Assembly: GCA_964057225.1 (NCBI GenBank)
Contig: OZ059898.1
Span: 21,514,001 to 21,578,000 of the forward strand
DNA: 64,000 nucleotides
DNA from: Auanema rhodensis
Taxonomy: Eukaryota; Animalia; Nematoda
Reading direction: 5' to 3'
The notes under the pieces were generated by a model. That model was not told where the DNA came from, ran no database searches, and worked only from the letters and a program-made list of their open reading frames with translations. Position numbers and translations under genes: made by a program. Of this stretch, positions 3,001 through 57,435 are shown piece by piece. Numbering within the stretch: the stretch's first letter is position 1; each line of letters starts with the position of its first letter.

Positions 3001-5445
3001 TAAAGTTCACGTAAATTTCAAAGTCATGGTTACCATGAACCAATATCAATAAAAATTTGTTTTTAGACTAATATGGACATGGGGAATCTAATTTTGAAAA
3101 CCGCATCTCTTTATCTTTCACGTGAAGCGAGTTACATACCAAGTGCACATCACGTGTACATTTAATTAGCATAAATTAAAGTTCACGTAAATTTCAAAGT
3201 CATGGTTACCATGAACCAATATCAATAAAAATTTGTTTTTAGACTAATATGGACATGGGGAATCTAATTTTGGAAACCGCATCTCTTTATCTTTCACGTG
3301 AAGCGAGTCACATACCAAGTGCACATCACGTGTACATTTAATTAGCATAAATTAAAGTTCACGTAAATTTCAAAGTCATGGTTACCATGAACCAATATCA
3401 ATAAAAATTTGTATTTAGACTAATATGGACATGAGGAATCTAATTTTGAAAACCGCATCTCTTTATCTTTCACGTGAAGCGAGTTACATACCAAGTGCAC
3501 ATCACGTGTACATTTAATTAGCATAAATTAAAGTTCACGTAAATTTCAAAGTCATGGTTACCATGAACCAATATCAATAAAAATTTGTTTTTAGACTAAT
3601 ATGGACATGGGGAATCTAATTTTGAAAACCGCATCTCTTTATCTTTCACGTGAAGCGAGTTACATACCAAGTGCACATCACGTGTACATTTAATTATCAT
3701 AAATTAAAGTTCACGTAAATTTCAAAGTCATGGTGACCATGAACCAATATCAATAAAAATTTGTTTTTAGACTAATATGGACATGGGGAATCTAATTTTG
3801 AAAACCGCATCTCTTTATCTTTCACGTGAAGCGAGTTACATACCAAGTGCACATCACGTGTACATTTAATTAGCATAAATTAAAGTTCACGTAAATTTCA
3901 AAGTCATGGTTACCATGAACCAATATCAATAAAAATTTGTATTTAGACTAATATGGACATGAGGAATCTAATTTTGAAAACCGCATCTCTTTATCTTTCA
4001 CGTGAAGCGAGTTACATACCAAGTGCACATCACGTGTACATTTAATTAGCATAAATTAAAGTTCACGTAAATTTGAAAGTCATGGTTACCATGAACCAAT
4101 ATCAATAAAAATTTGTTTTTAGACTAATATGGACATGGGGAATCTAATTTTGAAAACCGCATCTCTTTATCTTTCACGTGAAGCGAGTTACATACCAAGT
4201 GCACATCACGTGTACATTTAATTAGCATAAATTAAAGTTCACGTAAATTTCAAAGTCATGGTTACCAGGCACCAATATCAATAAAAATTTGTTTTTAGAC
4301 TAATATGGACATGGGGAATCTAATTGTGAAAACCGCATCTCTTTATCTTTCACGTGAAGCGAGTTACATACCAAGTGCACATCACGTGTACATTTAATTA
4401 GCATAAATTAAAGTTCACGTAAATTTCAAAGTCATGGTTACCATGAAGCAATATCAATAAAAATTTGTTTTTAGACTAATATGGACATGGGGAATCTAAT
4501 TTTGAAAACCGCATCTCTTTATCTTTCACGTGAAGCGAGTTACATACCAAGTGCACATCACGTGTTCATTTAATTAGCATAAATTAAAGTTCACGTAAAT
4601 TTCAAAGTCATGGTTACCATGAACCAATATCAATAAAAATTTGTTTTTAGACTAATATGGACATGGGGAATCTAATTTTGAAAACCGCATCTCTTTATCT
4701 TTCACGTGAAGCGAGTTACATACCAAGTGCACATCACGTGTACATTTAATTAGCATAAATTAAAGTTCACGTAAATTTCAAAGTCATGGTTACCATGAAC
4801 CAATATCAATAAAAATTTGTTTTTAGACTAATATGGACATGGGGAATCTAATTTTGGAAACCGCATCTCTTTATCTTTCACGTGAAGCGAGTCACATACC
4901 AAGTGCACATCACGTGTACATTTAATTAGCATAAATTAAAGTTCACGTAAATTTCAAAGTCATGGTTACCATGAACCAATATCAATAAAAATTTGTATTT
5001 AGACTAATATGGACATGAGGAATCTAATTTTGAAAACCGCATCTCTTTATCTTTCACGTGAAGCGAGTTACATACCAAGTGCACATCACGTGTACATTTA
5101 ATTAGCATAAATTAAAGTTCACGTAAATTTCAAAGTCATGGTTACCATGAACCAATATCAATAAAAATTTGTTTTTAGACTAATATGGACATGGGGAATC
5201 TAATTTTGAAAACCGCATCTCTTTATCTTTCACGTGAAGCGAGTTACATACCAAGTGCACATCACGTGTACATTTAATTAGCATAAATTAAAGTTCACGT
5301 AAATTTCAAAGTCATGGTGACCATGAACCAATATCAATAAAAATTTGTTTTTAGACTAATATGGACATGGGGAATCTAATTTTGAAAACCGCATCTCTTT
5401 ATCTTTCACGTGAAGCGAGTTACATACCAAGTGCACATCACGTGT
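1..5445 (+). repeat. 176-bp tandem satellite array, about 31 monomers (continues off the left edge)
   Basis: GCATAAATTAAAG restarts at 1, 177, 881, 1761, 2641, 5281 (period 176). Consensus GCATAAATTAAAGTTCACGTAAATTTCAAAGTCATGGTTACCATGMACCAATATCAATAAAAATTTGTTTTTAGACTAATATGGACATGGGGAATCTAATTTTGAAAACCGCATCTCTTTATCTTTCACGTGAAGCGAGTTACATACCAAGTGCACATCACGTGTACATTTAATTA; monomers differ by only a few substitutions. Confidence 0.99.
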
Positions 5446-6782
5446 TCAAATCCGGCAATCGTTCTACTCCTTCCAATTATCGTCCTATATCTCTTACTCC
5501 TAGTCTCTCCAAGGTTTTTGAGCGTCTTATAAGCTCTCCCCTTCTCAACTTTGGCATTTCAACCGGTTCAATATCTTCTAACCAACACGCTTTTCTTCCT
5601 AAGCGTAATACGGTTTCAGCCATTATCAACAGTCATATTGCTTGGAGATCATCTATCGACAAAAACTTACCAGTTTTTGTTGCATTCATAGATTTCTCAA
5701 AAGCATTTGACCTCATCAATCACTCTATACTCATCCACAAACTTCACTCCATTGGTGTGCGTGGCTCTCTTCTATCATTTCTCAAAAATTTCATCACAAA
5801 CAGATCTTACTCAGTTTTGGTCAATAATTCTCTCTCCAACTCTACCAATTTATTGTGTGGCGTTCCCCAAGGTACTGTTTTAGGCCCTCTTCTTTTTCTT
5901 TTTTACATCAACGACATCACATCTTTTCTCCCTGATGACGTTCATTCCACTTTATTTGCTGACGATCTCAAGCTGTACAGCACTAACCGGGTAAGTCTTC
6001 AAAATGCACTCAATTCTCTTAATGATTGGTGTAACAACAACGGAATGAGAGTCAACACAAGCAAAACTAAAATAATGGTGTTTTCTGATGATAGCTCATC
6101 TCAAAAAATTGAAAAAACGTTTTCTTTCGGTGAGTTCCCTTTGTCTCTAGCATCAAGCTATAAAGACCTCGGAGTTTTAACAGACCAAAACTTATCATTT
6201 GGTAGTCACATCAACTATGTTAGCAACTTGGCAGCTCAAAAATGCCGCATTATCCTACGTTGTTTTCATTCTAGATCCCCGGTCTTAATGTTTAGACTTT
6301 TTTGTTGCTATGTTCGTCCTATTCTTGAGTACGCATCAGTCGTATGGTCACCACAGGATAACAAAAACAAAGCTCGTATAGAAAACGTACAGAAAAAGTT
6401 TTTGCGTGCAGTTTTTTGTAGGGCAGGAATTTTTTCTAGCTACGCCGATCAGCTTACCGCTCTTCAAGCCGATGATCTATCAACCAGAAGGCTGGTAACC
6501 GATCTTTTATTTTATTTTAACCATATTAAAGCTGAGGCAGAATTTAGAATTTTTGAAATTAAACTTTTTTCTCACTCTCTACGTAGACACCAATGGAATG
6601 TTGTTTTTCCGAATCTTCGGAAAAACACTTCAAGAAACGGCATCGAATACAGAGCTATAAAGGCATGGAATTCCTTACCTGAGAACCTAATTCAACAAAC
6701 AAAAATCGGAAGCTTCAAGAAACACCTCTACAATGCCCTACGAGGCTCACAACATGATCCTTCCACATTTTTATGTAGTTAA
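5361..6782 (+). CDS. Chimeric ORF: about 28 satellite-derived codons fused in frame to the truncated LINE ORF2 reverse transcriptase (no endonuclease)
   Basis: ORF track 473 aa. MDMGNLILKTASLYLSREASYIPSAHHV is satellite sequence (5361-5445); FKSGNRS onward aligns colinearly with ORF2 of element B. Expression is not demonstrated. Confidence 0.7.
   Translation: MDMGNLILKTASLYLSREASYIPSAHHVFKSGNRSTPSNYRPISLTPSLSKVFERLISSPLLNFGISTGSISSNQHAFLPKRNTVSAIINSHIAWRSSIDKNLPVFVAFIDFSKAFDLINHSILIHKLHSIGVRGSLLSFLKNFITNRSYSVLVNNSLSNSTNLLCGVPQGTVLGPLLFLFYINDITSFLPDDVHSTLFADDLKLYSTNRVSLQNALNSLNDWCNNNGMRVNTSKTKIMVFSDDSSSQKIEKTFSFGEFPLSLASSYKDLGVLTDQNLSFGSHINYVSNLAAQKCRIILRCFHSRSPVLMFRLFCCYVRPILEYASVVWSPQDNKNKARIENVQKKFLRAVFCRAGIFSSYADQLTALQADDLSTRRLVTDLLFYFNHIKAEAEFRIFEIKLFSHSLRRHQWNVVFPNLRKNTSRNGIEYRAIKAWNSLPENLIQQTKIGSFKKHLYNALRGSQHDPSTFLCS
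5440..5445 (+). other. Left target-site duplication ACGTGT (right copy 7262-7267)
   Basis: Direct repeat on both sides of element A. Length is ambiguous (4-6 bp) because the element tail ends in ...AAAC. Confidence 0.85.
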
Positions 6783-7261
6783 GTTCATTCTTGGTTATAA
6801 TCTCTTTGTTTTGTTTTTTTTTTCATATTACTCTTCGCGTTTTTGTTTTTTTCTCTTTAAATGTTTTTCTGATTATGACTAAGTGCGACAGTTTCATTTC
6901 TTTTTTCCAACCCTTCTACACTTCTTGTTACTTCGCTTCAAATCTTATAGACATGAGTCATACGGATTGAATGCAAGTTACCTCCTATTGTTAGAACGGG
7001 CTCGGCTCGAATCATGAGTACCTCCGTACCTAACAACTACCAACCGGAGGTCAGCAATTCGCTGAACAAAACCCCCTGTTCTCACTGGAAAAATTTGAAA
7101 GAAACTGCTCACTGCAACTCATTCTCAGATCATTCTCTCCCTAACTATGTTATATAATGTTTCCTATTTTTCCTGTTCCTATTGTAAGGTTCTTATACAT
7201 CCTACTACACAACTATTTACTCATTTCGTTAAACCTGTAATATTGAACATTAAACCAATAA
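5446..7261 (+). mobile_element. 5'-truncated CR1-clade-like LINE, subfamily A (RT domain, C-terminus and 3' UTR)
   Basis: Non-satellite 1816 bp flanked by ACGTGT at 5440-5445 and 7262-7267. The satellite phase shifts by 1822 bp (1816 + 6). Encodes non-LTR RT motifs YRPISLT, FIDFSKAFD, GVPQGTVLGPLLF, FADDLKLY, RPILEYASVVWSP. Ends in AACATTAAACCAATAA without poly(A). Confidence 0.95.
6874..7113 (+). ncRNA. Putative conserved structured RNA element in LINE A 3' UTR
   Basis: Blocks shared with the element B 3' UTR are mutually complementary: TATGACT/AGTCATA, CAGTTTC/GAAACTG, TACGGA/TCCGTA, ACCTCC/GGAGGT, TCAGC/GCTGA. Confidence 0.6.
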
Positions 7262-10200
7262 ACGTGTACATTTAATTAGCATAAATTAAAGTTCACGTAA
7301 ATTTCAAAGTCATGGTTACCATGAACCAATATCAATAAAAATTTGTATTTAGACTAATATGGACATGAGGAATCTAATTTTGAAAACCGCATCTCTTTAT
7401 CTTTCACGTGAAGCGAGTTACATACCAAGTGCACATCACGTGTACATTTAATTAGCATAAATTAAAGTTCACGTAAATTTGAAAGTCATGGTTACCATGA
7501 ACCAATATCAATAAAAATTTGTTTTTAGACTAATATGGACATGGGGAATCTAATTTTGAAAACCGCATCTCTTTATCTTTCACGTGAAGCGAGTTACATA
7601 CCAAGTGCACATCACGTGTACATTTAATTAGCATAAATTAAAGTTCACGTAAATTTCAAAGTCATGGTTACCATGAACCAATATCAATAAAAATTTGTTT
7701 TTAGACTAATATGGACATGGGGAATCTAATTTTGAAAACCGCATCTCTTTATCTTTCACATGAAGCGAGTTACATACCAAGTGCACATCACGTGTACATT
7801 TAATTAGCATAAATTAAAGTTCACGTAAATTTCAAAGTCATGGTTACCATGAACCAATATCAATAAAAGTTTGTTTTTAGACTAATATGGACATGGGGAA
7901 TCTAATTTTGAAAACCGCATCTCTTTATCTTTCACGTGAAGCGAGTTACATACCAAGTGCACATCACGTGTACATTTAATTAGCATAAATTAAAGTTCAC
8001 GTAAATTTCAAAGTCATGGTTACCATGCACCAATATCAATAAAAATTTGTTTTTAGACTAATATGGACATGAGGAATCTAATTTTGAAAACCGCATCTCT
8101 TTATCTTCCACGTGAAGCGAGTTACATACCAAGTGCACATCACGTGTACATTTAATTAGCATAAATTAAAGTTCACGTAAATTTCAAAGTCATGGTTACC
8201 ATGCACCAATATCAATAAAAATTTGTTTTTAGACTAATATGGACATGGGGAATCTAATTGTGAAAACCGCATCTCTTTATCTTTCACGTGAAGCGAGTTA
8301 CATACCAAGTGCACATCACGTGTACATTTAATTAGCATAAATTAAAGTTCACGTAAATTTCAAAGTCATGGTTACCATGAACCAATATCAATAAAAATTT
8401 GTTTTTAGACTAATATGGACATGGGGAATCTAATTTTGAAAACCGCATCTCTTTATCTTTCACGTGAAGCGAGTTACATACCAAGTGCACATCACGTGTA
8501 CATTTAATTAGCATAAATTAAAGTTCACGTAAATTTCAAAGTCATGGTGACCATGAACCAATATCAATAAAAATTTGTTTTTAGACTAATATGGACATGG
8601 GGAATCTAATTTTGAAAACCGCATCTCTTTATCTTTCACGTGAAGCGAGTTACATACCAAGTGCACATCACGTGTACATTTAATTAGCATAAATTAAAGT
8701 TCACGTAAATTTCAAAGTCATGGTGACCATGAACCAATATCAATAAAAATTTGTTTTTAGACTAATATGGACATGGGGAATCTAATTTTGAAAACCGCAT
8801 CTCTTTATCTTTCACGTGAAGCGAGTTACATACCAAGTGCACATCACGTGTACATTTAATTAGCATAAATTAAAGTTCATGTAAATTTCAAAGTCATGGT
8901 TACCATGAACCAATATCAATAAAAATTTGTATTTAGACTAATATGGACATGAGGAATCTAATTTTGAAAACCGCATCTCTTTATCTTTCACGTGAAGCGA
9001 GTTACATACCAAGTGCACATCACGTGTACATTTAATTAGCATAAATTAAAGTTCACGTAAATTTCAAAGTCATGGTTACCATGAACCAATATCAATAAAA
9101 ATTTGTTTTTAGACTAATATGGACATGGGGAATCTAATTTTGAAAACCGCATCTCTTTATCTTTCACGTGAAGCGAGTTACATACCAAGTGCACATCACG
9201 TGTACATTTAATTAGCATAAATTAAAGTTCACGTAAATTTCAAAGTCATGGTTACCATGAACCAATATCAATAAAAATTTGTTTTTAGACTAATATGGAC
9301 ATGGGGAATCTAATTTTGGAAACCGCATCTCTTTATCTTTCACGTGAAGCGAGTTACATACCAAGTGCACATCACGTGTACATTTAATTAGCATAAATTA
9401 AAGTTCACGTAAATTTCAAAGTCATGGTTACCATGAACCAATATCAATAAAAATTTGTTTTTAGACTAATATGGACATGGGGAATCTAATTTTGAAAACC
9501 GCATCTCTTTATCTTTCACGTGAAGCGAGTTACATACCAAGTGCACATCACGTGTACATTTAATTAGCATAAATTAAAGTTCACGTAAATTTCAAAGTCA
9601 TGGTTACCAGGCACCAATATCAATAAAAATTTGTTTTTAGACTAATATGGACATGGGGAATCTAATTGTGAAAACCGCATCTCTTTATCTTTCACGTGAA
9701 GCGAGTTACATACCAAGTGCACATCACGTGTACATTTAATTAGCATAAATTAAAGTTCACGTAAATTTCAAAGTCATGGTTACCATGCACCAATATCAAT
9801 AAAAATTTGTTTTTAGACTAATATGGACATGAGGAATCTAATTTTGAAAACCGCATCTCTTTATCTTCCACGTGAAGCGAGTTACATACCAAGTGCACAT
9901 CACGTGTACATTTAATTAGCATAAATTAAAGTTCACGTAAATTTCAAAGTCATGGTTACCAGGCACCAATATCAATAAAAATTTGTTTTTAGACTAATAT
10001 GGACATGGGGAATCTAATTGTGAAAACCGCATCTCTTTATCTTTCACGTGAAGCGAGTTACATACCAAGTGCACATCACGTGTACATTTAATTAGCATAA
10101 ATTAAAGTTCACGTAAATTTCAAAGTCATGGTTACCATGAAGCAATATCAATAAAAATTTGTTTTTAGACTAATATGGACATGGGGAATCTAATTTTGAA

Positions 10201-13200
10201 AACCGCATCTCTTTATCTTTCACGTGAAGCGAGTTACATACCAAGTGCACATCACGTGTACATTTAATTAGCATAAATTAAAGTTCACGTAAATTTCAAA
10301 GTCATGGTTACCATGAACCAATATCAATAAAAATTTGTTTTTAGACTAATATGGACATGGGGAATCTAATTTTGAAAACCGCATCTCTTTATCTTTCACG
10401 TGAAGCGAGTTACATACCAAGTGCACATCACGTGTACATTTAATTAGCATAAATTAAAGTTCACGTAAATTTCAAAGTCATGGTTACCATGAACCAATAT
10501 CAATAAAAATTTGTTTTTAGACTAATATGGACATGGGGAATCTAATTTTGGAAACCGCATCTCTTTATCTTTCACGTGAAGCGAGTCACATACCAAGTGC
10601 ACATCACGTGTACATTTAATTAGCATAAATTAAAGTTCACGTAAATTTCAAAGTCATGGTTACCATGAACCAATATCAATAAAAATTTGTATTTAGACTA
10701 ATATGGACATGAGGAATCTAATTTTGAAAACCGCATCTCTTTATCTTTCACGTGAAGCGAGTTACATACCAAGTGCACATCACGTGTACATTTAATTAGC
10801 ATAAATTAAAGTTCACGTAAATTTCAAAGTCATGGTTACCATGAACCAATATCAATAAAAATTTGTTTTTAGACTAATATGGACATGGGGAATCTAATTT
10901 TGAAAACCGCATCTCTTTATCTTTCACGTGAAGCGAGTTACATACCAAGTGCACATCACGTGTACATTTAATTAGCATAAATTAAAGTTCACGTAAATTT
11001 CAAAGTCATGGTGACCATGAACCAATATCAATAAAAATTTGTTTTTAGACTAATATGGACATGGGGAATCTAATTTTGAAAACCGCATCTCTTTATCTTT
11101 CACGTGAAGCGAGTTACATACCAAGTGCACATCACGTGTACATTTAATTAGCATAAATTAAAGTTCACGTAAATTTCAAAGTCATGGTTACCATGAACCA
11201 ATATCAATAAAAATTTGTATTTAGACTAATATGGACATGAGGAATCTAATTTTGAAAACCGCATCTCTTTATCTTTCACGTGAAGCGAGTTACATACCAA
11301 GTGCACATCACGTGTACATTTAATTAGCATAAATTAAAGTTCACGTAAATTTGAAAGTCATGGTTACCATGAACCAATATCAATAAAAATTTGTTTTTAG
11401 ACTAATATGGACATGGGGAATCTAATTTTGAAAACCGCATCTCTTTATCTTTCACGTGAAGCGAGTTACATACCAAGTGCACATCACGTGTACATTTAAT
11501 TAGCATAAATTAAAGTTCACGTAAATTTCAAAGTCATGGTTACCATGAACCAATATCAATAAAAATTTGTTTTTAGACTAATATGGACATGGGGAATCTA
11601 ATTTTGAAAACCGCATCTCTTTATCTTTCACGTGAAGCGAGTTACATACCAAGTGCACATCACGTGTACATTTAATTAGCATAAATTAAAGTTCACGTAA
11701 ATTTCAAAGTCATGGTTACCATGAACCAATATCAATAAAAATTTGTTTTTAGACTAACATGGACATGGGGAATCTAATTTTGAAAACCGCATCTCTTTAT
11801 CTTTCACGTGAAGCGAGTTACATACCAAGTGCACATCACGTGTACATTTAATTAGCATAAATTAAAGTTCACGTAAATTTCAAAGTCATGGTTACCATGC
11901 ACCAATATCAATAAAAATTTGTTTTTAGACTAATATAGACATGAGGAATCTAATTTTGAAAACCGCATCTCTTTATCTTCCACGTGAAGCGAGTTACATA
12001 CCAAGTGCACATCACGTGTACATTTAATTAGCATAAATTAAAGTTCACGTAAATTTCAAAGTCATGGTTACCATGCACCAATATCAATAAAAATTTGTTT
12101 TTAGACTAATATGGACATGGGGAATCTAATTGTGAAAACCGCATCTCTTTATCTTTCACGTGAAGCGAGTTACATACCAAGTGCACATCACGTGTACATT
12201 TAATTAGCATAAATTAAAGTTCACGTAAATTTCAAAGTCATGGTTACCATGAACCAATATCAATAAAAATTTGTTTTTAGACTAATATGGACATAGGGAA
12301 TCTAATTTTGAAAACCGCATCTCTTTATCTTTCACGTGAAGCGAGTTACATACCAAGTGCACATCACGTGTACATTTAATTAGCATAAATTAAAGTTCAC
12401 GTAAATTTCAAAGTCATGGTTACCATGAACCAATATCAATAAAAATTTGTTTTTAGACTAATATGGACATGAGGAATCTAATTTTGAAAACCGCATCTCT
12501 TTATCTTCCACGTGAAGCGAGTTACATACCAAGTGCACATCACGTGTACATTTAATTAGCATAAATTAAAGTTCACGTAAATTTCAAAGTCATGGTTACC
12601 ATGAACCAATATCAATAAAAATTTGTTTTTAGACTAATATGGACATGGGGAATCTAATTTTGAAAACCGCATCTCTTTATCTTTCACGTGAAGCGAGTTA
12701 CATACCAAGTGCACATCACGTGTACATTTAATTAGCATAAATTAAAGTTCACGTAAATTTCAAAGTCATGGTTACCATGCACCAATATCAATAAAAATTT
12801 GTTTTTAGACTAATATGGACATGAGGAATCTAATTTTGAAAACCGCATCTCTTTATCTTCCACGTGAAGCGAGTTACATACCAAGTGCACATCACGTGTA
12901 CATTTAATTAGCATAAATTAAAGTTCACGTAAATTTCAAAGTCATGGTTACCATGCACCAATATCAATAAAAATTTGTTTTTAGACTAATATGGACATGG
13001 GGAATCTAATTGTGAAAACCGCATCTCTTTATCTTTCACGTGAAGCGAGTTACATACCAAGTGCACATCACGTGTACATTTAATTAGCATAAATTAAAGT
13101 TCACGTAAATTTCAAAGTCATGGTTACCATGAACCAATATCAATAAAAATTTGTTTTTAGACTAATATGGACATGGGGAATCTAATTTTGAAAACCGCAT

Positions 13201-44133: not shown

Positions 44134-44168
44134 AAATTTGTTTTTAGACTGTTTTTAGACTTTAGACT
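44113..44168. other. Inversion breakpoint with nested templated repeats
   Basis: AAAAATTTGTTTTTAGACT (44113-44131), the same again (44132-44150), GTTTTTAGACT (44151-44161), TTAGACT (44162-44168), then minus-strand satellite CCCCATGTCC. Confidence 0.92.
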
Positions 44169-48500: not shown

Positions 48501-49003
48501 TTAATGTTTACACGTTTAATGTTTATTGTTCAATATCACAGGTTAAGACAGTAGCTGTTAAGTCATGGAGTGAAAAAATCAAGAACCATTCAATAAGAAC
48601 ATAAAAAAGGACTTTTAATATTGTAAGTTCGATAAGAGCTCGCTTATCTATGATCAATAGTGAACAGTCTGCCAAATAAAATTCTTGCTGTATGCTTGGG
48701 GTTTGTTCAGCACAATGGCTGACCTCACTAATGTGGTTGTTAGGTACGGTGGTACTCGTGATGTGAGGCAAGCCCGTTCTAGCAATTTGGAGGTAACTAG
48801 CGTCCGATCCGTATGACTAATGTCTATAGGAATAGTGACGAAGTAACAATTATTGAGAAGGGACAAAGAAAAATAGATGGTAGACTGTTGCCATGTGGTC
48901 ATAGAGAAGTGTAAAAAAATACGAACTACAAATAAAAAGGAGCCTGATAAAAGAAAAAAAAATAGTTTTTCGAGAGGTGAGAACATTAATTACAATGGAT
49001 GGT

Positions 49004-52000
49004 TTACAAATCAATTGGAGCAGAGAGTAGGTGTTTTTTAAAATTATGAACATTAGTAAGGTTGATAAGGTTTTCAGGTAGATCGTTCCATGTTTTGATG
49101 CTTCTGTACTCAATACCATTTCTTGTCGCCTTTTTCCGAAGCTCGGGATAGTCGATATTCCATTGGTGTCTGCGAAGAGAGTGGGTGAAATGTTTAATTT
49201 GAAAAATTCTTAAAATACTGTCCGTTGATACGTCTTTAATTTGAGAGAAATAGAAACCTAGATCAGTTACCTGTCTCCTGGTTGATAGTTCTTGAGCATT
49301 CAAAAAAGTGAGCTGACTTTTGTAGTCGGAAAAAATTCCTGCTCTTGAGAAGACTGCTCGCAAGAATTTTTTTTGAACCATCTCAATACGAGATATTTTT
49401 TTAGATACTTGGGGAGACCATATCACGGATGCATATTCAAGGATTGGTCGAACGTAGCTGCAAAAAAGGTTGAACATAAATGAAGGTGATCTAGAGTAGA
49501 AGCAACGTAGAAGGATGCGACATTTCAGAGCTGCGGCGCAAGAGATGGCGTTTATGTGACAATCAAATGTTAGATTGTTATCAGTTAAGACTCCAAGGTC
49601 TTTATAATGAGGTACAAAGTCTAAAGGAAACTCACCAAAGGTAAATGGCTCGGTGGGGTTGAGGGTTGAGCTATTATTGCACACAATCATAATTTTGGAT
49701 TTGGTGGTGTTGACCATCATTCCATTATTTTTGCACCAGGCGTTGATTGTGTTTAAGGCAATCTGTAGACTTACCGGATTAGTACTGTATAGTTTGAGAT
49801 CATCGGCAAAAAGTGTAGGATGAACGTCTTCAGGGAGAGAAGACGTAATGTCATTAATGTAGAAAAGGAATAGAAGAGGACCGAGAACAGTGCCTTGTGG
49901 GACACCACAAGATAAGTTTACAGAAGTAGAAAGAGAACCATTGACAAGAACTGAGTAAGATCTGCCAGTGATGAAGTTTTTGAGAAAAGTTTGAAGAGAA
50001 CCGCAGATACCAATGGTTTTAAATTTGTGGAAAAGAACCGAGTGATCAATTAGATCAAAAGCTTTAGAGAAGTCTATAAAAGCAGTATAGACTGGAATGT
50101 TTTTATCCAAACATGATCTCCAGGCAATATGATTGTTAATGATTGCTGATATGGTATTACGTTTAGGAAGAAAAGCGTGCTGGTGAGCAGATATAGATCC
50201 AGTAGAAATGCCAAAGTGGAGGAGCGGGGGTGAAATGAGTCGCTCAAAAACTTTGGAAAGACTTGGTGTTAATGATATAGGGCGATAGTTTGAAGGATTA
50301 GAGCGATTTCCGGATTTGAAAACAGGACGGATCCAAGCTTTCTTCCAGTCCGGAGGGCATGAAGAAGAAACGAGTAAATTGTGAAAAATGAAGGCAAGTG
50401 GGTAGCAAAGAGTAGAGGCGCACTGATTAAGAAAGTAGTAGGGAATGCCATCAGAAGAAGTAGAAACTCTGAGAGGAAGATGAGAAAGAACTTTATAGAC
50501 TTTTTCGGGAGAAATGTCTATAAAATCAATGATAGAGGAAGGGCGAGAGGAGCTGTTGATTAAATCCGATGAAATACTTGGTTTGACAGAAAAAGAGCTT
50601 GCAAAAATGGAAGCTTTTTCTGTGTCTGTCGAGTATATTTCTTCACCAAGTCTAATCGTGGGGATATCTGAAGAGCAACCACCGAGACGAGTTCTACAGA
50701 AGCGATAAAAAAGTTTGGGGTTATTGGTTGAAGCAATGTGTTCTTCTTCCAAAATAGACTTTTGTTTAATAAGTCTATCTAGTTTTATAGTTAGTTTTTT
50801 GCGGAGAAGCTCGTCACGGTGGCAAATAGATGAACTGAGCCTTTTGATGTAACAGTAGAGATCCGCAATATTGCGGTCAACTTTTTTTCTACGCCTAGGT
50901 TGTTTGTGAGGAACGAATACAGAGATTATGGATTGTAGGATGTTGGTGAATTTGGAGTAAGAGTCAAGAGGGGAAAGACCAGATAATACCAAAGAAAAGT
51001 CGATGCTGACAAGATGGCGATTGATGGCATTGAAGTCGGCTCGATAGAAATTGAGTTGAGAAAAGTTGGAAAGTGAGGAGGTATTGAAGAATGTATTGGA
51101 AGAGAAAGGAAGGGTATCCAGAGGGGATACAGGGGTGTTGATGATGATGGAGAATGTAACCGAGAAGTGATCGGAGTTACCCAATGGAGGGGAGCGTGAT
51201 ATATTAGATATGATTGAAGGATTGTTTGTGATAAGGTAGTCTAAGATGTTGTTACCACGTGTAGGAAAATTGACAAGTTGATCAGAGTGACTACTTTGGA
51301 GAAATTGAATAATTGATTTACTAGAAGGAGATGAGAGTGAGGACTGAAGAAGATCCCAATTGATATTAGGAAAGTTCAGGTCACCCGTAATAAAGAAAGA
51401 GCGGTTAGAAATATGACCATTGAGATCAGAAAGATAAGAACAAAAATCAGAGTGAGAAGCAGTAGGGGAACGATAACAAACGGAGAAAACCGAGTTGTTA
51501 GAGGTTAGAAGGATGGTAACATATTGAACCGATGAAGAGAGGGGTGAGGAGGAGAGTAAAATTGAGTTAATTTGTTTTTTTAAGAACAAAAGAGTACCAC
51601 CGCCGCGTGAAGAATGCTTGTCTGCTCTGAATATGTTGTAATGATCATTTAGAGGAAGATGATCAGAAGAAAAATCAGAAAACAGCCAAGATTCCGATAT
51701 GGCGATGATATCAGGGGATGAGATAGAATGAATGATTGTGAGGAAATGAAGTTTATTGAGAATAGAACGTGCATTGTAACAGTGGACTGATAGTTTAACA
51801 GGGACATGAGAAGAAAGCAAGCATGGTGAAGAAGCGGTTTTATCGAAAGGACATGTTGTTACAGGACCGAGATAAAGATGTTGTATCGGATCCGCTTCTT
51901 GATCTAGTAGGAAGTTCGGCAGTAGGCTTAACAGAGCGTGGTGGATTCTTTCTTCTTCTTGGGCTAATAGAAGATTTTTTCTCCAGAGAAAGAATTTTTG

Positions 52001-52087
52001 ACCTGCCAGTTGAGCGACTATTCCTACTAGATTTAGAAGGGGGGCTAGATATAACACCAGTATCAATATTGGACGGACATTGGACAT
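49004..52087 (-). CDS. LINE ORF2: APE endonuclease + reverse transcriptase (inverted copy)
   Basis: 1027-aa ORF with APE motifs YNARS, IAISESW, YRSP, GDLNFP, PTRGNNILD, SDH and RT motifs including FADD. True start uncertain. Confidence 0.93.
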   Translation of the reverse strand: MSNVRPILILVLYLAPLLNLVGIVAQLAGQKFFLWRKNLLLAQEEERIHHALLSLLPNFLLDQEADPIQHLYLGPVTTCPFDKTASSPCLLSSHVPVKLSVHCYNARSILNKLHFLTIIHSISSPDIIAISESWLFSDFSSDHLPLNDHYNIFRADKHSSRGGGTLLFLKKQINSILLSSSPLSSSVQYVTILLTSNNSVFSVCYRSPTASHSDFCSYLSDLNGHISNRSFFITGDLNFPNINWDLLQSSLSSPSSKSIIQFLQSSHSDQLVNFPTRGNNILDYLITNNPSIISNISRSPPLGNSDHFSVTFSIIINTPVSPLDTLPFSSNTFFNTSSLSNFSQLNFYRADFNAINRHLVSIDFSLVLSGLSPLDSYSKFTNILQSIISVFVPHKQPRRRKKVDRNIADLYCYIKRLSSSICHRDELLRKKLTIKLDRLIKQKSILEEEHIASTNNPKLFYRFCRTRLGGCSSDIPTIRLGEEIYSTDTEKASIFASSFSVKPSISSDLINSSSRPSSIIDFIDISPEKVYKVLSHLPLRVSTSSDGIPYYFLNQCASTLCYPLAFIFHNLLVSSSCPPDWKKAWIRPVFKSGNRSNPSNYRPISLTPSLSKVFERLISPPLLHFGISTGSISAHQHAFLPKRNTISAIINNHIAWRSCLDKNIPVYTAFIDFSKAFDLIDHSVLFHKFKTIGICGSLQTFLKNFITGRSYSVLVNGSLSTSVNLSCGVPQGTVLGPLLFLFYINDITSSLPEDVHPTLFADDLKLYSTNPVSLQIALNTINAWCKNNGMMVNTTKSKIMIVCNNSSTLNPTEPFTFGEFPLDFVPHYKDLGVLTDNNLTFDCHINAISCAAALKCRILLRCFYSRSPSFMFNLFCSYVRPILEYASVIWSPQVSKKISRIEMVQKKFLRAVFSRAGIFSDYKSQLTFLNAQELSTRRQVTDLGFYFSQIKDVSTDSILRIFQIKHFTHSLRRHQWNIDYPELRKKATRNGIEYRSIKTWNDLPENLINLTNVHNFKKHLLSAPIDL

Positions 52088-52609
52088 TTGAATTGGACTT
52101 AGAAACAGTAGAAGTATTTAGAGAAACGTGTGGAGTAGAAGTGGTTGAACGGGCAGTTGGTTTACGTGGAATCTTTATAAGTTTGAGATCGCGTACAATG
52201 AAAAGTGATTCACTATTATCCAAATTTTTCGCTTTTGCTTCTTCGCGCAGTTTTTTTTCAAGATCTACCTCGAAGGGAAGATAATCGCGACGAATAAACG
52301 TTTTAGACAAGCTTTCAAAACATTTAGCTTTGTTTGTCCTAATGGTTTCAATGATTTTGTCACGTAAATCAACTGTTGAACATGAAATAATGAGAGGGCC
52401 TGGAGAATTAGATTTGAGAGTTGAGCGAGTAATGGTTATTTGGTTGCTGTTAATCAAAGAAATCAAGGTGTCATCATTAGACTTTCCAGCTATAAGTTTG
52501 AGAAGGGCGGTAGGGTCCGAGGGAAACTCAGATGAATCGTGAGGAACCCTAAACCAAACCGCTCTTTTCAAGCGATAAGAATACCTTGATTCCTCAGATC
52601 GAACTTTTT
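51840..52609 (-). pseudogene. N-terminally truncated ORF1 of the inverted copy
   Basis: Matches ORF1 from about residue 91 onward; lacks the ATG and the coiled-coil N-terminus. The track start at 52571 is a TTG codon. Confidence 0.85.
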
Positions 52610-52611
52610 TT

Positions 52612-52827
52612 CGCGCCGTGACCTCATCCCGCGCCGTGACCTCATCCCGCGCCGTGACCTCAACCCGCGCCGTGACCTCATCCCGCGCCGTGACCTCATC
52701 CCGCGCCGTGACCTCATCCCGCGCCGTGACCTCATTCCGCGCCGTGACCTCATTCCGCGCCGTGACCTCATTCCGCGCCGTGACCTCATTCCGCGCCGTG
52801 ACCTCATTCCGCGCCGTGACCTCATTT
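52612..52827 (+). repeat. 12 x 18-bp GC-rich minisatellite CGCGCCGTGACCTCAT(C/T)C at the LINE 5' end; candidate promoter
   Basis: Twelve counted units. The first six end TCC (one ACC), the next five TTC, the last TTT. Promoter role is inference. Confidence 0.95.
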
Positions 52828-52861
52828 CGTCGGACTGGTTCTTAAAGGTACGCTTTCTTAG

Positions 52862-53049
52862 TTCTTTCATTTTTTTTTCTTGTTCTTTTTCTTTTATCTC
52901 TTCTATTTTATTACTCTCTCTCTTTTCCAATTCTCTCTGTCCTTTCTGTCTTTTACTTTGTTATTTATTGTCTTTCACTTCTTTATACCACTGTCTTTAC
53001 ATTCTTTTTTCTTATTTTTCTGTTTCTTAATCTTATCTTTTTTCTCAAT
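52862..53049 (+). other. Polypyrimidine-rich 5' UTR of LINE B
   Basis: About 190 nt dominated by T and C directly upstream of the ORF1 ATG. Confidence 0.75.
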
Positions 53050-54090
53050 ATGACAGCTGTTACAAAAGATTTCTTTACTGATGCTCTCGAGTCTCTTTCC
53101 AAATCTTTCCGAGAATCTTTCTCTCAACTTTCATCTGACATCAAAAACGAACTCAACAGTATTAAAATCAATGTAGCAGCTAATGAAGCTCGTATCAAAA
53201 CTATCGAAACAAACCTCAAATCACGTATCGATACTTTAGAGCAACAACTCCTAAATGTTCCAACTTTCAATGCCTCTTCTCCTTCTCAAACCACTTCTAC
53301 CAGTATTATGTGTCATGTTCAAAAAGTTCGATCTGAGGAATCAAGGTATTCTTATCGCTTGAAAAGAGCGGTTTGGTTTAGGGTTCCTCACGATTCATCT
53401 GAGTTTCCCTCGGACCCTACCGCCCTTCTCAAACTTATAGCTGGAAAGTCTAATGATGACACCTTGATTTCTTTGATTAACAGCAACCAAATAACCATTA
53501 CTCGCTCAACTCTCAAATCTAATTCTCCAGGCCCTCTCATTATTTCATGTTCAACAGTTGATTTACGTGACAAAATCATTGAAACCATTAGGACAAACAA
53601 AGCTAAATGTTTTGAAAGCTTGTCTAAAACGTTTATTCGTCGCGATTATCTTCCCTTCGAGGTAGATCTTGAAAAAAAACTGCGCGAAGAAGCAAAAGCG
53701 AAAAATTTGGATAATAGTGAATCACTTTTCATTGTACGCGATCTCAAACTTATAAAGATTCCACGTAAACCAACTGCCCGTTCAACCACTTCTACTCCAC
53801 ACGTTTCTCTAAATACTTCTACTGTTTCTAAGTCCAATTCAAATGTCCAATGTCCGTCCAATATTGATACTGGTGTTATATCTAGCCCCCCTTCTAAATC
53901 TAGTAGGAATAGTCGCTCAACTGGCAGGTCAAAAATTCTTTCTCTGGAGAAAAAATCTTCTATTAGCCCAAGAAGAAGAAAGAATCCACCACGCTCTGTT
54001 AAGCCTACTGCCGAACTTCCTACTAGATCAAGAAGCGGATCCGATACAACATCTTTATCTCGGTCCTGTAACAACATGTCCTTTCGTTAA
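53050..54090 (+). CDS. LINE ORF1 protein (coiled coil, probable RRM-like core, Ser/Arg/Lys-rich tail)
   Basis: 346-aa ATG-started ORF upstream of ORF2. Heptad-like LSSDIKNELNSIKINVAANEARIKTIETNLKSRIDTLEQQL; core with PGPLII and FIRRD reminiscent of CR1/L2 ORF1p; basic low-complexity C-terminus. Confidence 0.85.
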   Translation: MTAVTKDFFTDALESLSKSFRESFSQLSSDIKNELNSIKINVAANEARIKTIETNLKSRIDTLEQQLLNVPTFNASSPSQTTSTSIMCHVQKVRSEESRYSYRLKRAVWFRVPHDSSEFPSDPTALLKLIAGKSNDDTLISLINSNQITITRSTLKSNSPGPLIISCSTVDLRDKIIETIRTNKAKCFESLSKTFIRRDYLPFEVDLEKKLREEAKAKNLDNSESLFIVRDLKLIKIPRKPTARSTTSTPHVSLNTSTVSKSNSNVQCPSNIDTGVISSPPSKSSRNSRSTGRSKILSLEKKSSISPRRRKNPPRSVKPTAELPTRSRSGSDTTSLSRSCNNMSFR

Positions 54091-56926
54091 AACCGCTTCT
54101 TCACCATGCTTGCTTTCTTCTCATGTCCCTGTTAAACTATCAGTCCACTGTTACAATGCACGTTCTATTCTCAATAAACTTCATTTCCTCACAATCATTC
54201 ATTCTATCTCATCCCCTGATATCATCGCCATATCGGAATCTTGGCTGTTTTCTGATTTTTCTTCTGATCATCTTCCTCTAAATGATCATTACAACATATT
54301 CAGAGCAGACAAGCATTCTTCACGCGGCGGTGGTACTCTTTTGTTCTTAAAAAAACAAATTAACTCAATTTTACTCTCCTCCTCACCCCTCTCTTCATCG
54401 GTTCAATATGTTACCATCCTTCTAACCTCTAACAACTCGGTTTTCTCCGTTTGTTATCGTTCCCCTACTGCTTCTCACTCTGATTTTTGTTCTTATCTTT
54501 CTGATCTCAATGGTCATATTTCTAACCGCTCTTTCTTTATTACGGGTGACCTGAACTTTCCTAATATCAATTGGGATCTTCTTCAGTCCTCACTCTCATC
54601 TCCTTCTAGTAAATCAATTATTCAATTTCTCCAAAGTAGTCACTCTGATCAACTTGTCAATTTTCCTACACGTGGTAACAACATCTTAGACTACCTTATC
54701 ACAAACAATCCTTCAATCATATCTAATATATCACGCTCCCCTCCATTGGGTAACTCCGATCACTTCTCGGTTACATTCTCCATCATCATCAACACCCCTG
54801 TATCCCCTCTGGATACCCTTCCTTTCTCTTCCAATACATTCTTCAATACCTCCTCACTTTCCAACTTTTCTCAACTCAATTTCTATCGAGCCGACTTCAA
54901 TGCCATCAATCGCCATCTTGTCAGCATCGACTTTTCTTTGGTATTATCTGGTCTTTCCCCTCTTGACTCTTACTCCAAATTCACCAACATCCTACAATCC
55001 ATAATCTCTGTATTCGTTCCTCACAAACAACCTAGGCGTAGAAAAAAAGTTGACCGCAATATTGCGGATCTCTACTGTTACATCAAAAGGCTCAGTTCAT
55101 CTATTTGCCACCGTGACGAGCTTCTCCGCAAAAAACTAACTATAAAACTAGATAGACTTATTAAACAAAAGTCTATTTTGGAAGAAGAACACATTGCTTC
55201 AACCAATAACCCCAAACTTTTTTATCGCTTCTGTAGAACTCGTCTCGGTGGTTGCTCTTCAGATATCCCCACGATTAGACTTGGTGAAGAAATATACTCG
55301 ACAGACACAGAAAAAGCTTCCATTTTTGCAAGCTCTTTTTCTGTCAAACCAAGTATTTCATCGGATTTAATCAACAGCTCCTCTCGCCCTTCCTCTATCA
55401 TTGATTTTATAGACATTTCTCCCGAAAAAGTCTATAAAGTTCTTTCTCATCTTCCTCTCAGAGTTTCTACTTCTTCTGATGGCATTCCCTACTACTTTCT
55501 TAATCAGTGCGCCTCTACTCTTTGCTACCCACTTGCCTTCATTTTTCACAATTTACTCGTTTCTTCTTCATGCCCTCCGGACTGGAAGAAAGCTTGGATC
55601 CGTCCTGTTTTCAAATCCGGAAATCGCTCTAATCCTTCAAACTATCGCCCTATATCATTAACACCAAGTCTTTCCAAAGTTTTTGAGCGACTCATTTCAC
55701 CCCCGCTCCTCCACTTTGGCATTTCTACTGGATCTATATCTGCTCACCAGCACGCTTTTCTTCCTAAACGTAATACCATATCAGCAATCATTAACAATCA
55801 TATTGCCTGGAGATCATGTTTGGATAAAAACATTCCAGTCTATACTGCTTTTATAGACTTCTCTAAAGCTTTTGATCTAATTGATCACTCGGTTCTTTTC
55901 CACAAATTTAAAACCATTGGTATCTGCGGTTCTCTTCAAACTTTTCTCAAAAACTTCATCACTGGCAGATCTTACTCAGTTCTTGTCAATGGTTCTCTTT
56001 CTACTTCTGTAAACTTATCTTGTGGTGTCCCACAAGGCACTGTTCTCGGTCCTCTTCTATTCCTTTTCTACATTAATGACATTACGTCTTCTCTCCCTGA
56101 AGACGTTCATCCTACACTTTTTGCCGATGATCTCAAACTATACAGTACTAATCCGGTAAGTCTACAGATTGCCTTAAACACAATCAACGCCTGGTGCAAA
56201 AATAATGGAATGATGGTCAACACCACCAAATCCAAAATTATGATTGTGTGCAATAATAGCTCAACCCTCAACCCCACCGAGCCATTTACCTTTGGTGAGT
56301 TTCCTTTAGACTTTGTACCTCATTATAAAGACCTTGGAGTCTTAACTGATAACAATCTAACATTTGATTGTCACATAAACGCCATCTCTTGCGCCGCAGC
56401 TCTGAAATGTCGCATCCTTCTACGTTGCTTCTACTCTAGATCACCTTCATTTATGTTCAACCTTTTTTGCAGCTACGTTCGACCAATCCTTGAATATGCA
56501 TCCGTGATATGGTCTCCCCAAGTATCTAAAAAAATATCTCGTATTGAGATGGTTCAAAAAAAATTCTTGCGAGCAGTCTTCTCAAGAGCAGGAATTTTTT
56601 CCGACTACAAAAGTCAGCTCACTTTTTTGAATGCTCAAGAACTATCAACCAGGAGACAGGTAACTGATCTAGGTTTCTATTTCTCTCAAATTAAAGACGT
56701 ATCAACGGACAGTATTTTAAGAATTTTTCAAATTAAACATTTCACCCACTCTCTTCGCAGACACCAATGGAATATCGACTATCCCGAGCTTCGGAAAAAG
56801 GCGACAAGAAATGGTATTGAGTACAGAAGCATCAAAACATGGAACGATCTACCTGAAAACCTTATCAACCTTACTAATGTTCATAATTTTAAAAAACACC
56901 TACTCTCTGCTCCAATTGATTTGTAA
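53843..56926 (+). CDS. LINE ORF2: APE endonuclease + reverse transcriptase
   Basis: Intact 1027-codon frame. APE domain starts near 54137 (LSVHCYNARS). RT motifs YRPISLT, DFSKAFD, GVPQG, FADD, YKDLGV; C-terminal RPILEYAS…WSP…VQKKF typical of the CR1 clade. No RNase H or CCHC motif seen. Confidence 0.95.
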   Translation: MSNVRPILILVLYLAPLLNLVGIVAQLAGQKFFLWRKNLLLAQEEERIHHALLSLLPNFLLDQEADPIQHLYLGPVTTCPFVKTASSPCLLSSHVPVKLSVHCYNARSILNKLHFLTIIHSISSPDIIAISESWLFSDFSSDHLPLNDHYNIFRADKHSSRGGGTLLFLKKQINSILLSSSPLSSSVQYVTILLTSNNSVFSVCYRSPTASHSDFCSYLSDLNGHISNRSFFITGDLNFPNINWDLLQSSLSSPSSKSIIQFLQSSHSDQLVNFPTRGNNILDYLITNNPSIISNISRSPPLGNSDHFSVTFSIIINTPVSPLDTLPFSSNTFFNTSSLSNFSQLNFYRADFNAINRHLVSIDFSLVLSGLSPLDSYSKFTNILQSIISVFVPHKQPRRRKKVDRNIADLYCYIKRLSSSICHRDELLRKKLTIKLDRLIKQKSILEEEHIASTNNPKLFYRFCRTRLGGCSSDIPTIRLGEEIYSTDTEKASIFASSFSVKPSISSDLINSSSRPSSIIDFIDISPEKVYKVLSHLPLRVSTSSDGIPYYFLNQCASTLCYPLAFIFHNLLVSSSCPPDWKKAWIRPVFKSGNRSNPSNYRPISLTPSLSKVFERLISPPLLHFGISTGSISAHQHAFLPKRNTISAIINNHIAWRSCLDKNIPVYTAFIDFSKAFDLIDHSVLFHKFKTIGICGSLQTFLKNFITGRSYSVLVNGSLSTSVNLSCGVPQGTVLGPLLFLFYINDITSSLPEDVHPTLFADDLKLYSTNPVSLQIALNTINAWCKNNGMMVNTTKSKIMIVCNNSSTLNPTEPFTFGEFPLDFVPHYKDLGVLTDNNLTFDCHINAISCAAALKCRILLRCFYSRSPSFMFNLFCSYVRPILEYASVIWSPQVSKKISRIEMVQKKFLRAVFSRAGIFSDYKSQLTFLNAQELSTRRQVTDLGFYFSQIKDVSTDSILRIFQIKHFTHSLRRHQWNIDYPELRKKATRNGIEYRSIKTWNDLPENLINLTNVHNFKKHLLSAPIDL
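54079..54090 (+). promoter_or_regulatory. Candidate +1 ribosomal frameshift site TCC TTT CGT TAA at the ORF1/ORF2 junction
   Basis: Last ORF1 codons are S-F-R-stop; the +1 frame (TTC GTT AAA) is ORF2. Matches the UCC_UUU_CGU / UUU_CGN motif. Confidence 0.55.
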
Positions 56927-57026
56927 ACCATCCATTGTAATTAATGTTCTCACCTCTCGAAAAACTATTTTTTTTTCTTTTATCAGGCTCCTTTTTATTT
57001 GTAGTTCGTATTTTTTTACACTTCTC

Positions 57027-57267
57027 TATGACCACATGGCAACAGTCTACCATCTATTTTTCTTTGTCCCTTCTCAATAATTGTTACTTCGTCACTATTC
57101 CTATAGACATTAGTCATACGGATCGGACGCTAGTTACCTCCAAATTGCTAGAACGGGCTTGCCTCACATCACGAGTACCACCGTACCTAACAACCACATT
57201 AGTGAGGTCAGCCATTGTGCTGAACAAACCCCAAGCATACAGCAAGAATTTTATTTGGCAGACTGTT
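57027..57267 (+). ncRNA. Putative conserved structured RNA element in LINE B 3' UTR (mirror copy 48663-48903)
   Basis: TATGAC/GTCATA, AACAGTCTACCA/TGGCAGACTGTT, TACGG/CCGTA, ACCTC/GAGGT and TCAGC/GCTGA occur in the same order as in element A. Confidence 0.6.
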
Positions 57268-57405
57268 CACTATTGATCATAGATAAGCGAGCTCTTATCG
57301 AACTTACAATATTAAAAGTCCTTTTTTATGTTCTTATTGAATGGTTCTTGATTTTTTCACTCCATGACTTAACAGCTACTGTCTTAACCTGTGATATTGA
57401 ACAAT

Positions 57406-57435
57406 AAACATTAAACGTGTAAACATTAAACGTGT
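57406..57435 (+). repeat. Duplicated 3' junction (AAACATTAAACGTGT) x2
   Basis: 57406-57420 and 57421-57435 are identical and each includes the target hexamer; mirrored at 48495-48524. Confidence 0.92.

Follow-up and report, generated by a model that had tools for sequence, protein, structure and literature searches.

Among APE-type LINEs, target specificity has been documented chiefly in the R1 and Tx1 clades (Kojima & Jurka 2015, PMC4640811), in agreement with the background on which the original prediction for this locus was built. In the R1 clade, the APE-type elements R1Bm (28S rDNA) and TRAS1/SART1 (telomeric TTAGG repeats) occupy a single position within a tandem target, inserting in one orientation only and creating short target-site duplications (TSDs). 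According to work from the Fujiwara laboratory, a target-matching sequence at the RNA 3' end reportedly helps to fix the junction in these R1-clade systems. The Tx1-clade elements (Tx1, Keno, Mutsu, Kibi and Koshi) are likewise APE-type and sequence-specific, with repeated targets (PMC4640811), and Tx1 is a member of the L1 group (PMC3747384). R2 and other RLE-type site-specific LINEs have likewise resided for long at one fixed position within multicopy tandem targets. However, these have a restriction-like endonuclease, one ORF only and zinc-finger/Myb DNA-binding domains at the N-terminus; the family described here has none of these features.

The CR1/L2 group (chicken and turtle CR1, UnaL2 and nematode CR1-like elements) has the following in common with this family: two ORFs, an APE, RT and C-terminal domain without RNase H, a 3' end without poly(A) but with a short repeated unit, and a conserved stem in the 3'UTR. 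For CR1/L2-type LINEs, stringent 3' recognition and slippage of 3' repeats have been described (PMC3747384). Yet, those families are described as dispersed and without defined targets, whereas the two elements of this locus, A and B, share one exact site.

Insertion site in the 176-bp satellite

The window, i.e., the whole stretch of 64,000 bp of Auanema rhodensis DNA that was analysed, consists for ~83% of a satellite with a TRF period of 176. Any insertion in the window would therefore fall in satellite, and location as such is uninformative. The features around A and B are as follows.

1 to 5439, + strand: 176-bp satellite left of A (TRF period 176; anchor chain and consensus)
5440 to 5445, + strand: upstream ACGTGT, the TSD of A or partly 5' microhomology
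5446 to 7261, + strand: element A, a 5'-truncated LINE copy with the RT and C-terminal part of ORF2, then 3'UTR (RVT_1)
7262 to 7267, + strand: downstream ACGTGT, the target site at the 3' junction of A
7262 to 44131, + strand: 176-bp satellite, 209 monomers, including 41750-43509, an uninterrupted near-identical paralogue of the flank of B' (the inverted copy of B, see below)
52610 to 57429, + strand: element B, an apparently full-length LINE of ~4.8 kb
57405 to 57435, + strand: 3' end of B, with two copies of the 15-nt unit AAACATTAAACGTGT (TRF row 57405-57436)
57430 to 64000, + strand: 176-bp satellite right of B, with private variants such as T36

The 3' ends of A and B both directly abut ACGTGTACATTT of the 176-bp monomer. 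A ends in ...CCAATAA, followed by ACGTGTACATTTAATTAGC (7261/7262, + strand), and B ends in ...CATTAA, again followed by ACGTGTACATTTAATTAGC (57429/57430, + strand). Both junctions thus have the form ...TAA followed by ACGTGT, and a poly(A) tail is absent from both elements. The satellite surrounding A and B is forward-oriented, and both elements are sense to it. Anchor spacing over A is 1998, or 176 + 1822, so that A adds exactly 1822 bp and the satellite phase is preserved exactly. ACGTGT stands on either side of A (5440-5445 and 7262-7267); GTGT is also present within the element at the 5' boundary of A, and the corresponding position of B reads ...CCTGTGTTCAAATC.

ACGTGT occurs once per monomer, on one strand only, and the palindromic CACGTG has two sites per monomer. 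The anchor-spacing analysis revealed no other insertions among the 299 full monomers of the window, and hence the other CACGT motifs, the second CACGTG included, are unused in the window. A uniform null gives p = 1/352 (~0.003) for a match of a second insertion in both site and strand, while a preference merely for CACGTG, with its two palindromic sites, would give p = 1/4. The same target sequence, position and orientation are shared by A and B as independent copies (n=2). In all these respects the original prediction, which had described both 3' junctions, the sense orientation, the unused CACGT motifs and a chance of ~1/352, was borne out by the junction sequences, the uninterrupted monomers and the uniform null.

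A non-specific LINE family might have reached the same phase twice by chance, given that there are only two independent events and that site specificity is generally not ascribed to CR1-type elements (PMC4640811). However, the probability of ~1/352, the common form of the two junctions, the clean ACGTGT duplication at A and the repetition of the target in the tail of B make such a coincidence very improbable.

The tail of B contains an extra unit, consisting of the 9-nt tail AAACATTAA plus ACGTGT, and the second ACGTGT of the 3' end (57430-57435) is the satellite target. Because ACGTGT also lies inside the tail, the exact junction of B is ambiguous by up to 6 nt. This internal copy of ACGTGT had escaped the original prediction. 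The duplicated tail unit suggests that the site was used repeatedly or that the tail annealed to the target. In the former case, the extra unit is what would be expected to remain of an abortive insertion of 9 nt, with a TSD of 6 bp, at the same site. Alternatively, RT slippage could have generated the duplicated unit instead of a second event.

Inverted copy of B and the satellite array

Left of B, the array switches orientation and contains an inverted copy of the element.

44132 to 44168, no strand: junction at which the orientation switches, with nested re-copies of 19, 11 and 7 nt, each of which ends in TTAGACT
44169 to 48500, - strand: reverse-oriented satellite flanking B'
48501 to 52609, - strand: B', a 5'-truncated inverted duplicate of B (blastn 99.976%, 1 mismatch/4109 bp)

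B' was considered as a third insertion event and rejected, as B and B' have the T36 flank variant in common. The flank of B' looked unrelated at first, and monomer-by-monomer analysis revealed it to be a mosaic, with the private T36 variant of B first and then an inverted copy of 41750-43509 (monomers 46741-48500; 2 mismatches/1760 bp). Hence, B' carries the junction of B by descent and is not an independent event. The single mismatch in 4109 bp and the T36 variant justify the earlier decision to leave the inverted copy out of the count.

Possibly, the head-to-head arrangement of B' and B, together with the inverted satellite block, is an artefact of the assembly, since the block combines copies from two different places and lies within near-identical, misassembly-prone repeats. 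Yet, nested re-copies of 19, 11 and 7 nt at the switch are typical of replicative template switching, and the arms are asymmetric around a unique centre of 711 bp. We therefore regard an artefact as improbable, and it would leave the junctions of A and B untouched.

Odd anchor spacings at 13070-15702 were examined as insertions and rejected, because they trace to two monomers with a 4-bp deletion; the remaining odd spacings in the array are mutated anchors. A literature search for the satellite gave plant satellites only, or nothing.

Divergence of A and B and their proposed mode of integration

Besides the 3' end, the following parts of the two elements were delimited.

6926 to 7070, + strand (B counterpart ~57082-57230): 3'UTR block conserved between A and B (alignments, consensus fold)
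52612 to 52825, + strand: 5'UTR of B, with an 18-bp GC-rich unit in 12 tandem copies (TRF, sequence)
53050 to 54090, + strand: ORF1 of B, 346 aa, with a long N-terminal helix, an alpha/beta domain and a Ser/Arg-rich tail
53843 to 56926, + strand: ORF2 of B, 1027 aa, intact, with APE (~aa 114-310), RT (~aa 598-801) and C-terminal domain

ORF1 and ORF2 of B overlap by 248 nt in different frames. Pfam recognised only Exo_endo_phos, Exo_endo_phos_2 and RVT_1 in ORF2. Its APE and RT are intact, with all APE catalytic residues and motifs kept, and the C-terminal ~225 aa past the RT are conserved with homologues to their ends. In A, the ORF (5361-6782) enters from the satellite, its 445-codon frame is unbroken, and the RVT_1 match has an E-value of 1.7e-34. 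Rfam contained no match to the elements, also when ribozymes at their 5' end were considered.

A and B are identical at 314/434 amino acids (72%) and at 71% of their coding nucleotides. Over 435 codons dN/dS was 0.11, with a saturated dS of ~1.8, which shows that A and B are separate active lineages and independent insertions. The pattern of substitutions supports the interpretation that they are long-separated lineages under purifying selection, which diverged as functional elements and not in place. This is in line with the original prediction that A and B are clearly different and independent, although its estimate of ~80% amino acid identity was slightly too high.

Conversely, a single old insertion, copied along with the array, might have given rise to both A and B, which would then have diverged in situ while concerted evolution homogenised the flanking monomers. 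Multi-monomer duplications are indeed common in the array, and B and B' show that an element and its junction can be copied together. However, a dN/dS of 0.11 over 435 codons and the unbroken frame of A signify selection for function, and A, a 5'-truncated copy, sits in exact phase between ACGTGT flanks of its own. Divergence in place is hence scarcely credible.

The 3'UTR block is 77–78% identical between A and B, against 42–57% in the neighbouring UTR (sliding window), and forms a candidate cis-acting RNA element. Both the block and the terminal stem were kept despite saturated synonymous sites. This conservation suggests that the RT recognises its own RNA 3' end, which would be of the 'stringent' type.

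The shared base and orientation of two diverged branches suggest sequence-targeted integration, from two independent events. We consider it rather probable that A and B represent two anciently separated branches, both still active recently, of a single APE-type LINE family. This family, most likely a member of the CR1 group, would use target-primed reverse transcription to insert at one defined sequence within the 176-bp monomer. In this proposal we infer where the nicks lie, what confers the specificity and to which clade the family belongs. The APE endonuclease would nick the bottom strand opposite CATC^ACGTGT, and the freed 3' end (...ACACGT-3') would prime cDNA synthesis on the RNA 3' end (...TAA). 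In the B lineage, the freed 3' end may first pair with ACGUGU at the RNA end. A break of the second strand <=6 bp downstream would then produce the ACGTGT duplication. Recognition by the endonuclease, pairing of the tail with the target, or a combination of the two might determine the site.

An alternative explanation might be that the family merely prefers a short motif (ACGTGT or a CACGTG-type E-box) wherever it occurs in the genome, and that the satellite offers one motif per 176 bp in a window that happens to be satellite. With ACGTGT once per monomer and on one strand, a 6-bp preference alone would force the site, and the window is nearly all satellite. Moreover, the nearest relatives from nematode genomes (C. 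brenneri and M. hapla) lie among genes and not in satellites (one with an A-rich tail), and the 440-bp repeat-bearing 5'UTR of B is its own, unlike site-specific elements that rely on co-transcription. In contrast, the unused second CACGTG of the monomer indicates that recognition reaches beyond the hexamer, both lineages retained the same site despite saturated dS, and the target motif is fixed within the tail of B. These three observations are all still compatible with a specificity of 6–7 bp, however, and although we regard a short-motif preference as unlikely, it has a stronger claim than either coincidence or divergence in place.

Clade affinity and relatives

The sequence-targeted family proposed above most likely belongs to the CR1 group, judging from its coding sequence and 3' ends. 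The architecture of ORF2 (APE, RT and C-terminal domain, with RNase H absent according to Pfam) and its relatives fit this group, and so do the missing poly(A), the short repeated unit and the conserved 3'UTR structure. In a tree of 32 proteins, which left out named CR1, L2, R1 and Tx1 references, A and B paired with a support of 100. Together with nematode LINEs (97–99), they fell in a clade that lacks RNase H. The clade of A and B was sister to PHD-bearing LINEs and apart from the RNase H-bearing ones. A coiled-coil-type ORF1 is allowed in CR1/L2, while type II ORF1 is also found in L1 and R1 (PMC4120745). The likeness of ORF1 to the coiled-coil type rests on a low-confidence model (mean pLDDT 51), in which the N-terminal helix exceeds a pLDDT of 90 and the alpha/beta domain is of low confidence. 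Pfam, motif scans and protein searches found no Pfam match, zinc knuckle or detectable homologue for ORF1.

Membership in the R1 clade found no support. The endonuclease profile of the family matched L1-EN (3e-12) and Exo III, but neither R1Bm EN nor TRAS1 EN at E <= 1; structures of both are presumably present in the PDB. This result came from the profile search alone, as phmmer with the endonuclease domain gave no match in the PDB. Regular-expression scans of ORF1, ORF2 and A found no CCHC or any other four-ligand motif, and thus neither the CCHC knuckles nor the post-RT Cys-His motif of the R1 clade. The target differs as well, since it is a non-coding 176-bp satellite, while the ACGTGT in the tail of B resembles the target-matching RNA 3' ends of R1-clade systems. 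Membership in the Tx1 clade (L1 group) likewise found no support, in a comparison with L1 and R2 RTs. With ORF2, phmmer matched only L1 and R2 RTs, and the weak score for L1 ORF2p (1.5e-14) was comparable to that for R2 (1.8e-11), so that the RT is about equally far from both; CCHC and a C-terminal Cys-His motif are lacking. For the CR1-like assignment of the original prediction, domains, tail, endonuclease profile and the tree without named references therefore give indirect support, while its shared site and independent insertions stand. Its idea of a family specialised for the satellite drew no support from the window, of which ~83% is satellite and in which a plain 6-bp preference would produce the same pattern.

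More tentatively, and with somewhat less than an even chance, a CR1-group lineage may have been specialised on one monomer position for longer than the synonymous saturation of its two branches. Its APE-based or RNA-pairing specificity would then have evolved independently of R1 and Tx1, and the lineage would be resident and still active in a large, possibly centromeric array. If true, this would be a third, independent origin of APE target specificity, and would illustrate the ease with which an APE endonuclease, or the pairing of RNA tail and target, can be retuned to a defined site. The satellite target would offer a natural case of a retrotransposon inhabiting a tandem array without hitting genes, with a bearing on the colonisation and rearrangement of satellite and centromere arrays and on efforts to find new enzymes for site-specific insertion. 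Because the ORFs of B are intact, the system looks experimentally tractable.

The collections searched yielded no additional copies of A or B. An exact look-up of ORF2 returned no record, and DNA scans of metagenome and prokaryote genome contigs gave zero matches to the conserved 3' tail and the satellite. Searches with full ORF2, the RT plus C-terminal half, and ORF1, exhaustive over representatives, found no proteins of >40% identity. The family also differs from described CR1/L2 elements in being <= 37% identical to any known protein. The relatives of ORF2 within this limit include nematode LINEs, with PHD-bearing elements as neighbours. The closest of them, L001, has a short (AAGT)n-type tail immediately after its ORF2.

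Position of the insertions within the satellite

Nearly the whole window consists of a satellite with a period of 176 bp and 32% GC (TRF; composition), which we phased on the anchor ACGTGTACATTTAATTAGC; 237 regular monomers went into the consensus. In all, the arrays contain 299 full monomers. Departures from the 176-bp spacing are limited to point-mutated anchors, two monomers, 1404 bp apart, with an identical 4-bp deletion (13246-13421 and 14650-14825), the LINE copy A, and a block at 44.1-57.4 kb that contains a second LINE, B, and its inverted duplicate, B'.

Satellite arrays and LINE copies
1-5439, 7262-44131 and 57430-64000, forward strand: satellite
44169-48500, reverse strand: satellite
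5446-7261, forward strand: A, 5'-truncated
48501-52609, reverse strand: B', 5'-truncated
about 52610-57429, forward strand: B, apparently full-length

The 3' end of A (...CCAATAA, 7261) and that of B (...CATTAA, 57429) both abut ACGTGTACATTTAATTAGC, and both elements lie sense to the satellite. The original prediction of a shared site and strand is thus confirmed, as is its remark that the other CACGT motifs are unused: two others per monomer carry no insertion, since no further monomer is interrupted in the window. Because satellite makes up about 83% of the window, location in the satellite is uninformative, and phase and strand alone carry information. Under a uniform null, their coincidence has p = 1/352. 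If the enzyme merely recognised CACGTG, the observed match would have p = 1/4. The monomer has a second CACGTG, 27 bp upstream, which no element in the window uses, and recognition must therefore reach beyond this hexamer. That sequence-targeted integration is real seems to us probable. The site itself (5425-5450 and every monomer boundary) lies where short palindromes (GTGCAC, CACGTG, TGTACA) cluster, and ATCACGTG is an E-box-like motif.

The anchor distance across A is 1998 bp (176 + 1822), so that no satellite bases were lost, and ACGTGT flanks A on both sides (5440-5445 and 7262-7267). Judged from sequence, this pair fits a 6-bp target-site duplication. Alternatively, as many as four of its bases (GTGT) may stem from 5' microhomology, since B has ...CCTGTGTTCAAATC at the point where the truncated 5' end of A meets the satellite. 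The satellite also supplies an in-frame ATG and 28 codons (5361-5444) ahead of the truncated ORF2 of A; the resulting chimeric frame of 473 aa is probably fortuitous.

Independence of the copies

At the amino-acid level A and B are 72% identical over 434 residues, and at the nucleotide level 71%, with dN = 0.20, dS = 1.83 and dN/dS = 0.11 (Nei-Gojobori, 435 codons). The part of ORF2 kept in A, 445 codons, is unbroken. A single old insertion in which A and B diverged in place is ruled out by these two results; A and B were thus functional while they diverged, and they were inserted in separate events, as had been proposed.

B' matches B 53321-57429 with 1 mismatch in 4109 bp. Taken whole, its satellite flank is no copy of the flank of B. 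Its first flank monomer has a T at monomer position 36, a variant found in none of the 238 monomers of the left array and in 6 of the 37 monomers right of B. From position 73 on, the flank repeats forward 41750-43509 in inverted orientation for ten monomers (46741-48500; 2 mismatches in 1760 bp), which places the crossover between positions 36 and 73. Hence, B' and at least 36 bp of its flank copy the junction of B, joined to a duplicate of another part of the array. This excludes B' as a separate insertion event, and the earlier decision to leave it uncounted was correct.

Overall, the reverse block represents an inverted duplication with a mosaic composition; its palindrome is asymmetric, with a centre (52610-53320) unique to B. 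At the orientation switch (44113-44175), the forward array ends at monomer position 94 (...TTAGACT), followed by re-copies of 19, 11 and 7 nt, each ending in TTAGACT, before the reverse satellite starts at position 109. This stuttered junction suggests a series of template switches in the course of replication or repair; a clean inversion fits it less well. Recent duplications of 6-15 monomers with 1-3 mismatches form many pairs in the array (e.g., 26614/32598 and 30486/35062); it shows a weak 8-monomer signal and no regular higher-order repeat.

Element structure and affiliation

Anatomy of B, with the conserved block shared with A
52612-52825: 5'UTR repeats, twelve tandem 18-bp GC-rich units (CGCGCCGTGACCTCATCC), then a long pyrimidine-rich stretch before ORF1
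53050-54090: ORF1, 346 aa
53843-56926: ORF2, 1027 aa, overlapping ORF1 by 248 nt (53843-54090) in another frame
56927-57429: 3'UTR, about 500 nt
A 6926-7070 and B about 57082-57230: conserved 3'UTR block, ~145 nt (A/B alignment)

The 18-bp repeats may form an internal promoter region. Within its first 130 codons, ORF2 has a single in-frame ATG, at 53843, deep within ORF1; its translation may proceed by frameshift, reinitiation or some other route. In ORF2, Pfam detects an APE endonuclease (at about residues 114-310) together with RVT_1 (598-801), and no other domain, RNase H included. In an alignment with nine homologues, B keeps all APE catalytic positions (N of NARS, E of SESW, GDxN, D and SDH). 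Neither ORF contains a CCHC or other four-ligand zinc motif. ORF1 has no Pfam match and no homologue; its single-sequence AlphaFold model, which shows an N-terminal helix of 65 residues at high confidence, an alpha/beta domain at low confidence and a Ser/Arg-rich tail that is disordered, is compatible with a putative coiled-coil type.

Protein searches found no close relative of the A/B family: best identities were 30% for full ORF2 (word-indexed search), 35-40% with the RT plus C-terminal half as query, and 35-37% when 1.84 billion representatives were scanned exhaustively with HMMER. Named neighbours were nematode proteins (C. brenneri, C. japonica, Meloidogyne) and one rotifer protein. An exact ORF2 look-up and DNA scans of metagenome and prokaryote genome contigs turned up neither the satellite nor another copy of A or B. 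A quick maximum-likelihood tree covering 32 proteins paired A with B (support 100) and joined them to three representatives (99), then to nematode sequences (97). Outside these comes a group with N-terminal PHD fingers, a domain originally discovered in CR1 elements (PMC4120745), and LINEs with RNase H stand apart in a clade of their own. Run against the PDB, the family's endonuclease profile matched L1-EN (3e-12) as well as Exo III, and left R1Bm EN and TRAS1 EN, whose structures we take to be present there, unmatched at E <= 1. RT scores were about equal for L1 ORF2p and R2. The closest relative, L001, carries an (AAGT)n-type tail directly past ORF2. The C-terminal motifs of ORF2 (LEYxxxxW..., VQKKFLR, ...WNxLP...FKxxL) presumably resemble those of chicken CR1.

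Together, the searches, tree, endonuclease profile and L001 tail argue against R1 and Tx1, whose testable membership features the family lacks, and for the CR1 group as the likely placement. The original prediction was borne out in part; the CR1-like assignment gains indirect support from tree neighbours, endonuclease profile and tail, within the limits of a tree built without named clade references. The family is probably a site-specific APE LINE of the CR1 group with the satellite monomer as target.

Proposed integration mechanism and 3' ends

On balance we favour, with some reserve, a CR1-group APE LINE family that would integrate by TPRT at one defined sequence of the 176-bp monomer. The bottom strand would be nicked opposite CATC^ACGTGT; the freed 3' end (...ACACGT) would prime on the RNA tail, where it may pair with a terminal ACGUGU, and the top strand would be cut up to 6 bp downstream. 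By analogy, this would be most like the working of R1, TRAS and SART, which likewise combine an APE-type element with one tandem-repeat position, a fixed orientation and an RNA 3' end that carries bases matching the target. A plain 6-bp preference for ACGTGT, without satellite specialisation, would also reproduce the data, as this motif occurs once per monomer and on one strand, and related nematode elements sit among genes, one with an A-rich tail. That the family is a true satellite specialist is accordingly a tentative proposal, somewhat more doubtful than not.

Alignment between the A and B 3'UTRs is poor outside the ~145-nt block, which has predicted stem-loops and a few compensatory changes, and the last ~80 nt, where in both elements a stem pairs TGTTCYTATTG with TRATATTGAACA. 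Since synonymous sites are saturated, these conserved parts point to candidate cis-acting RNA. No Rfam match was found in the B/B' region searched (48300-57700). A 'stringent' type of 3'-end recognition has been described for CR1/L2-type LINEs (PMC3747384).

Past the common TTGAACAWTAAAC, A ends in CAATAA and B in ATTAA. The tail of B continues with ACGTGT and AAACATTAA ahead of the genomic ACGTGT, giving two copies of the 15-nt unit AAACATTAAACGTGT. One reading is a 9-nt abortive insertion with a 6-bp target-site duplication at the regenerated site, i.e., another event at the same position; the other is a 3' repeat from RT slippage that includes target-matching bases. Both readings tie the B lineage to ACGTGT.
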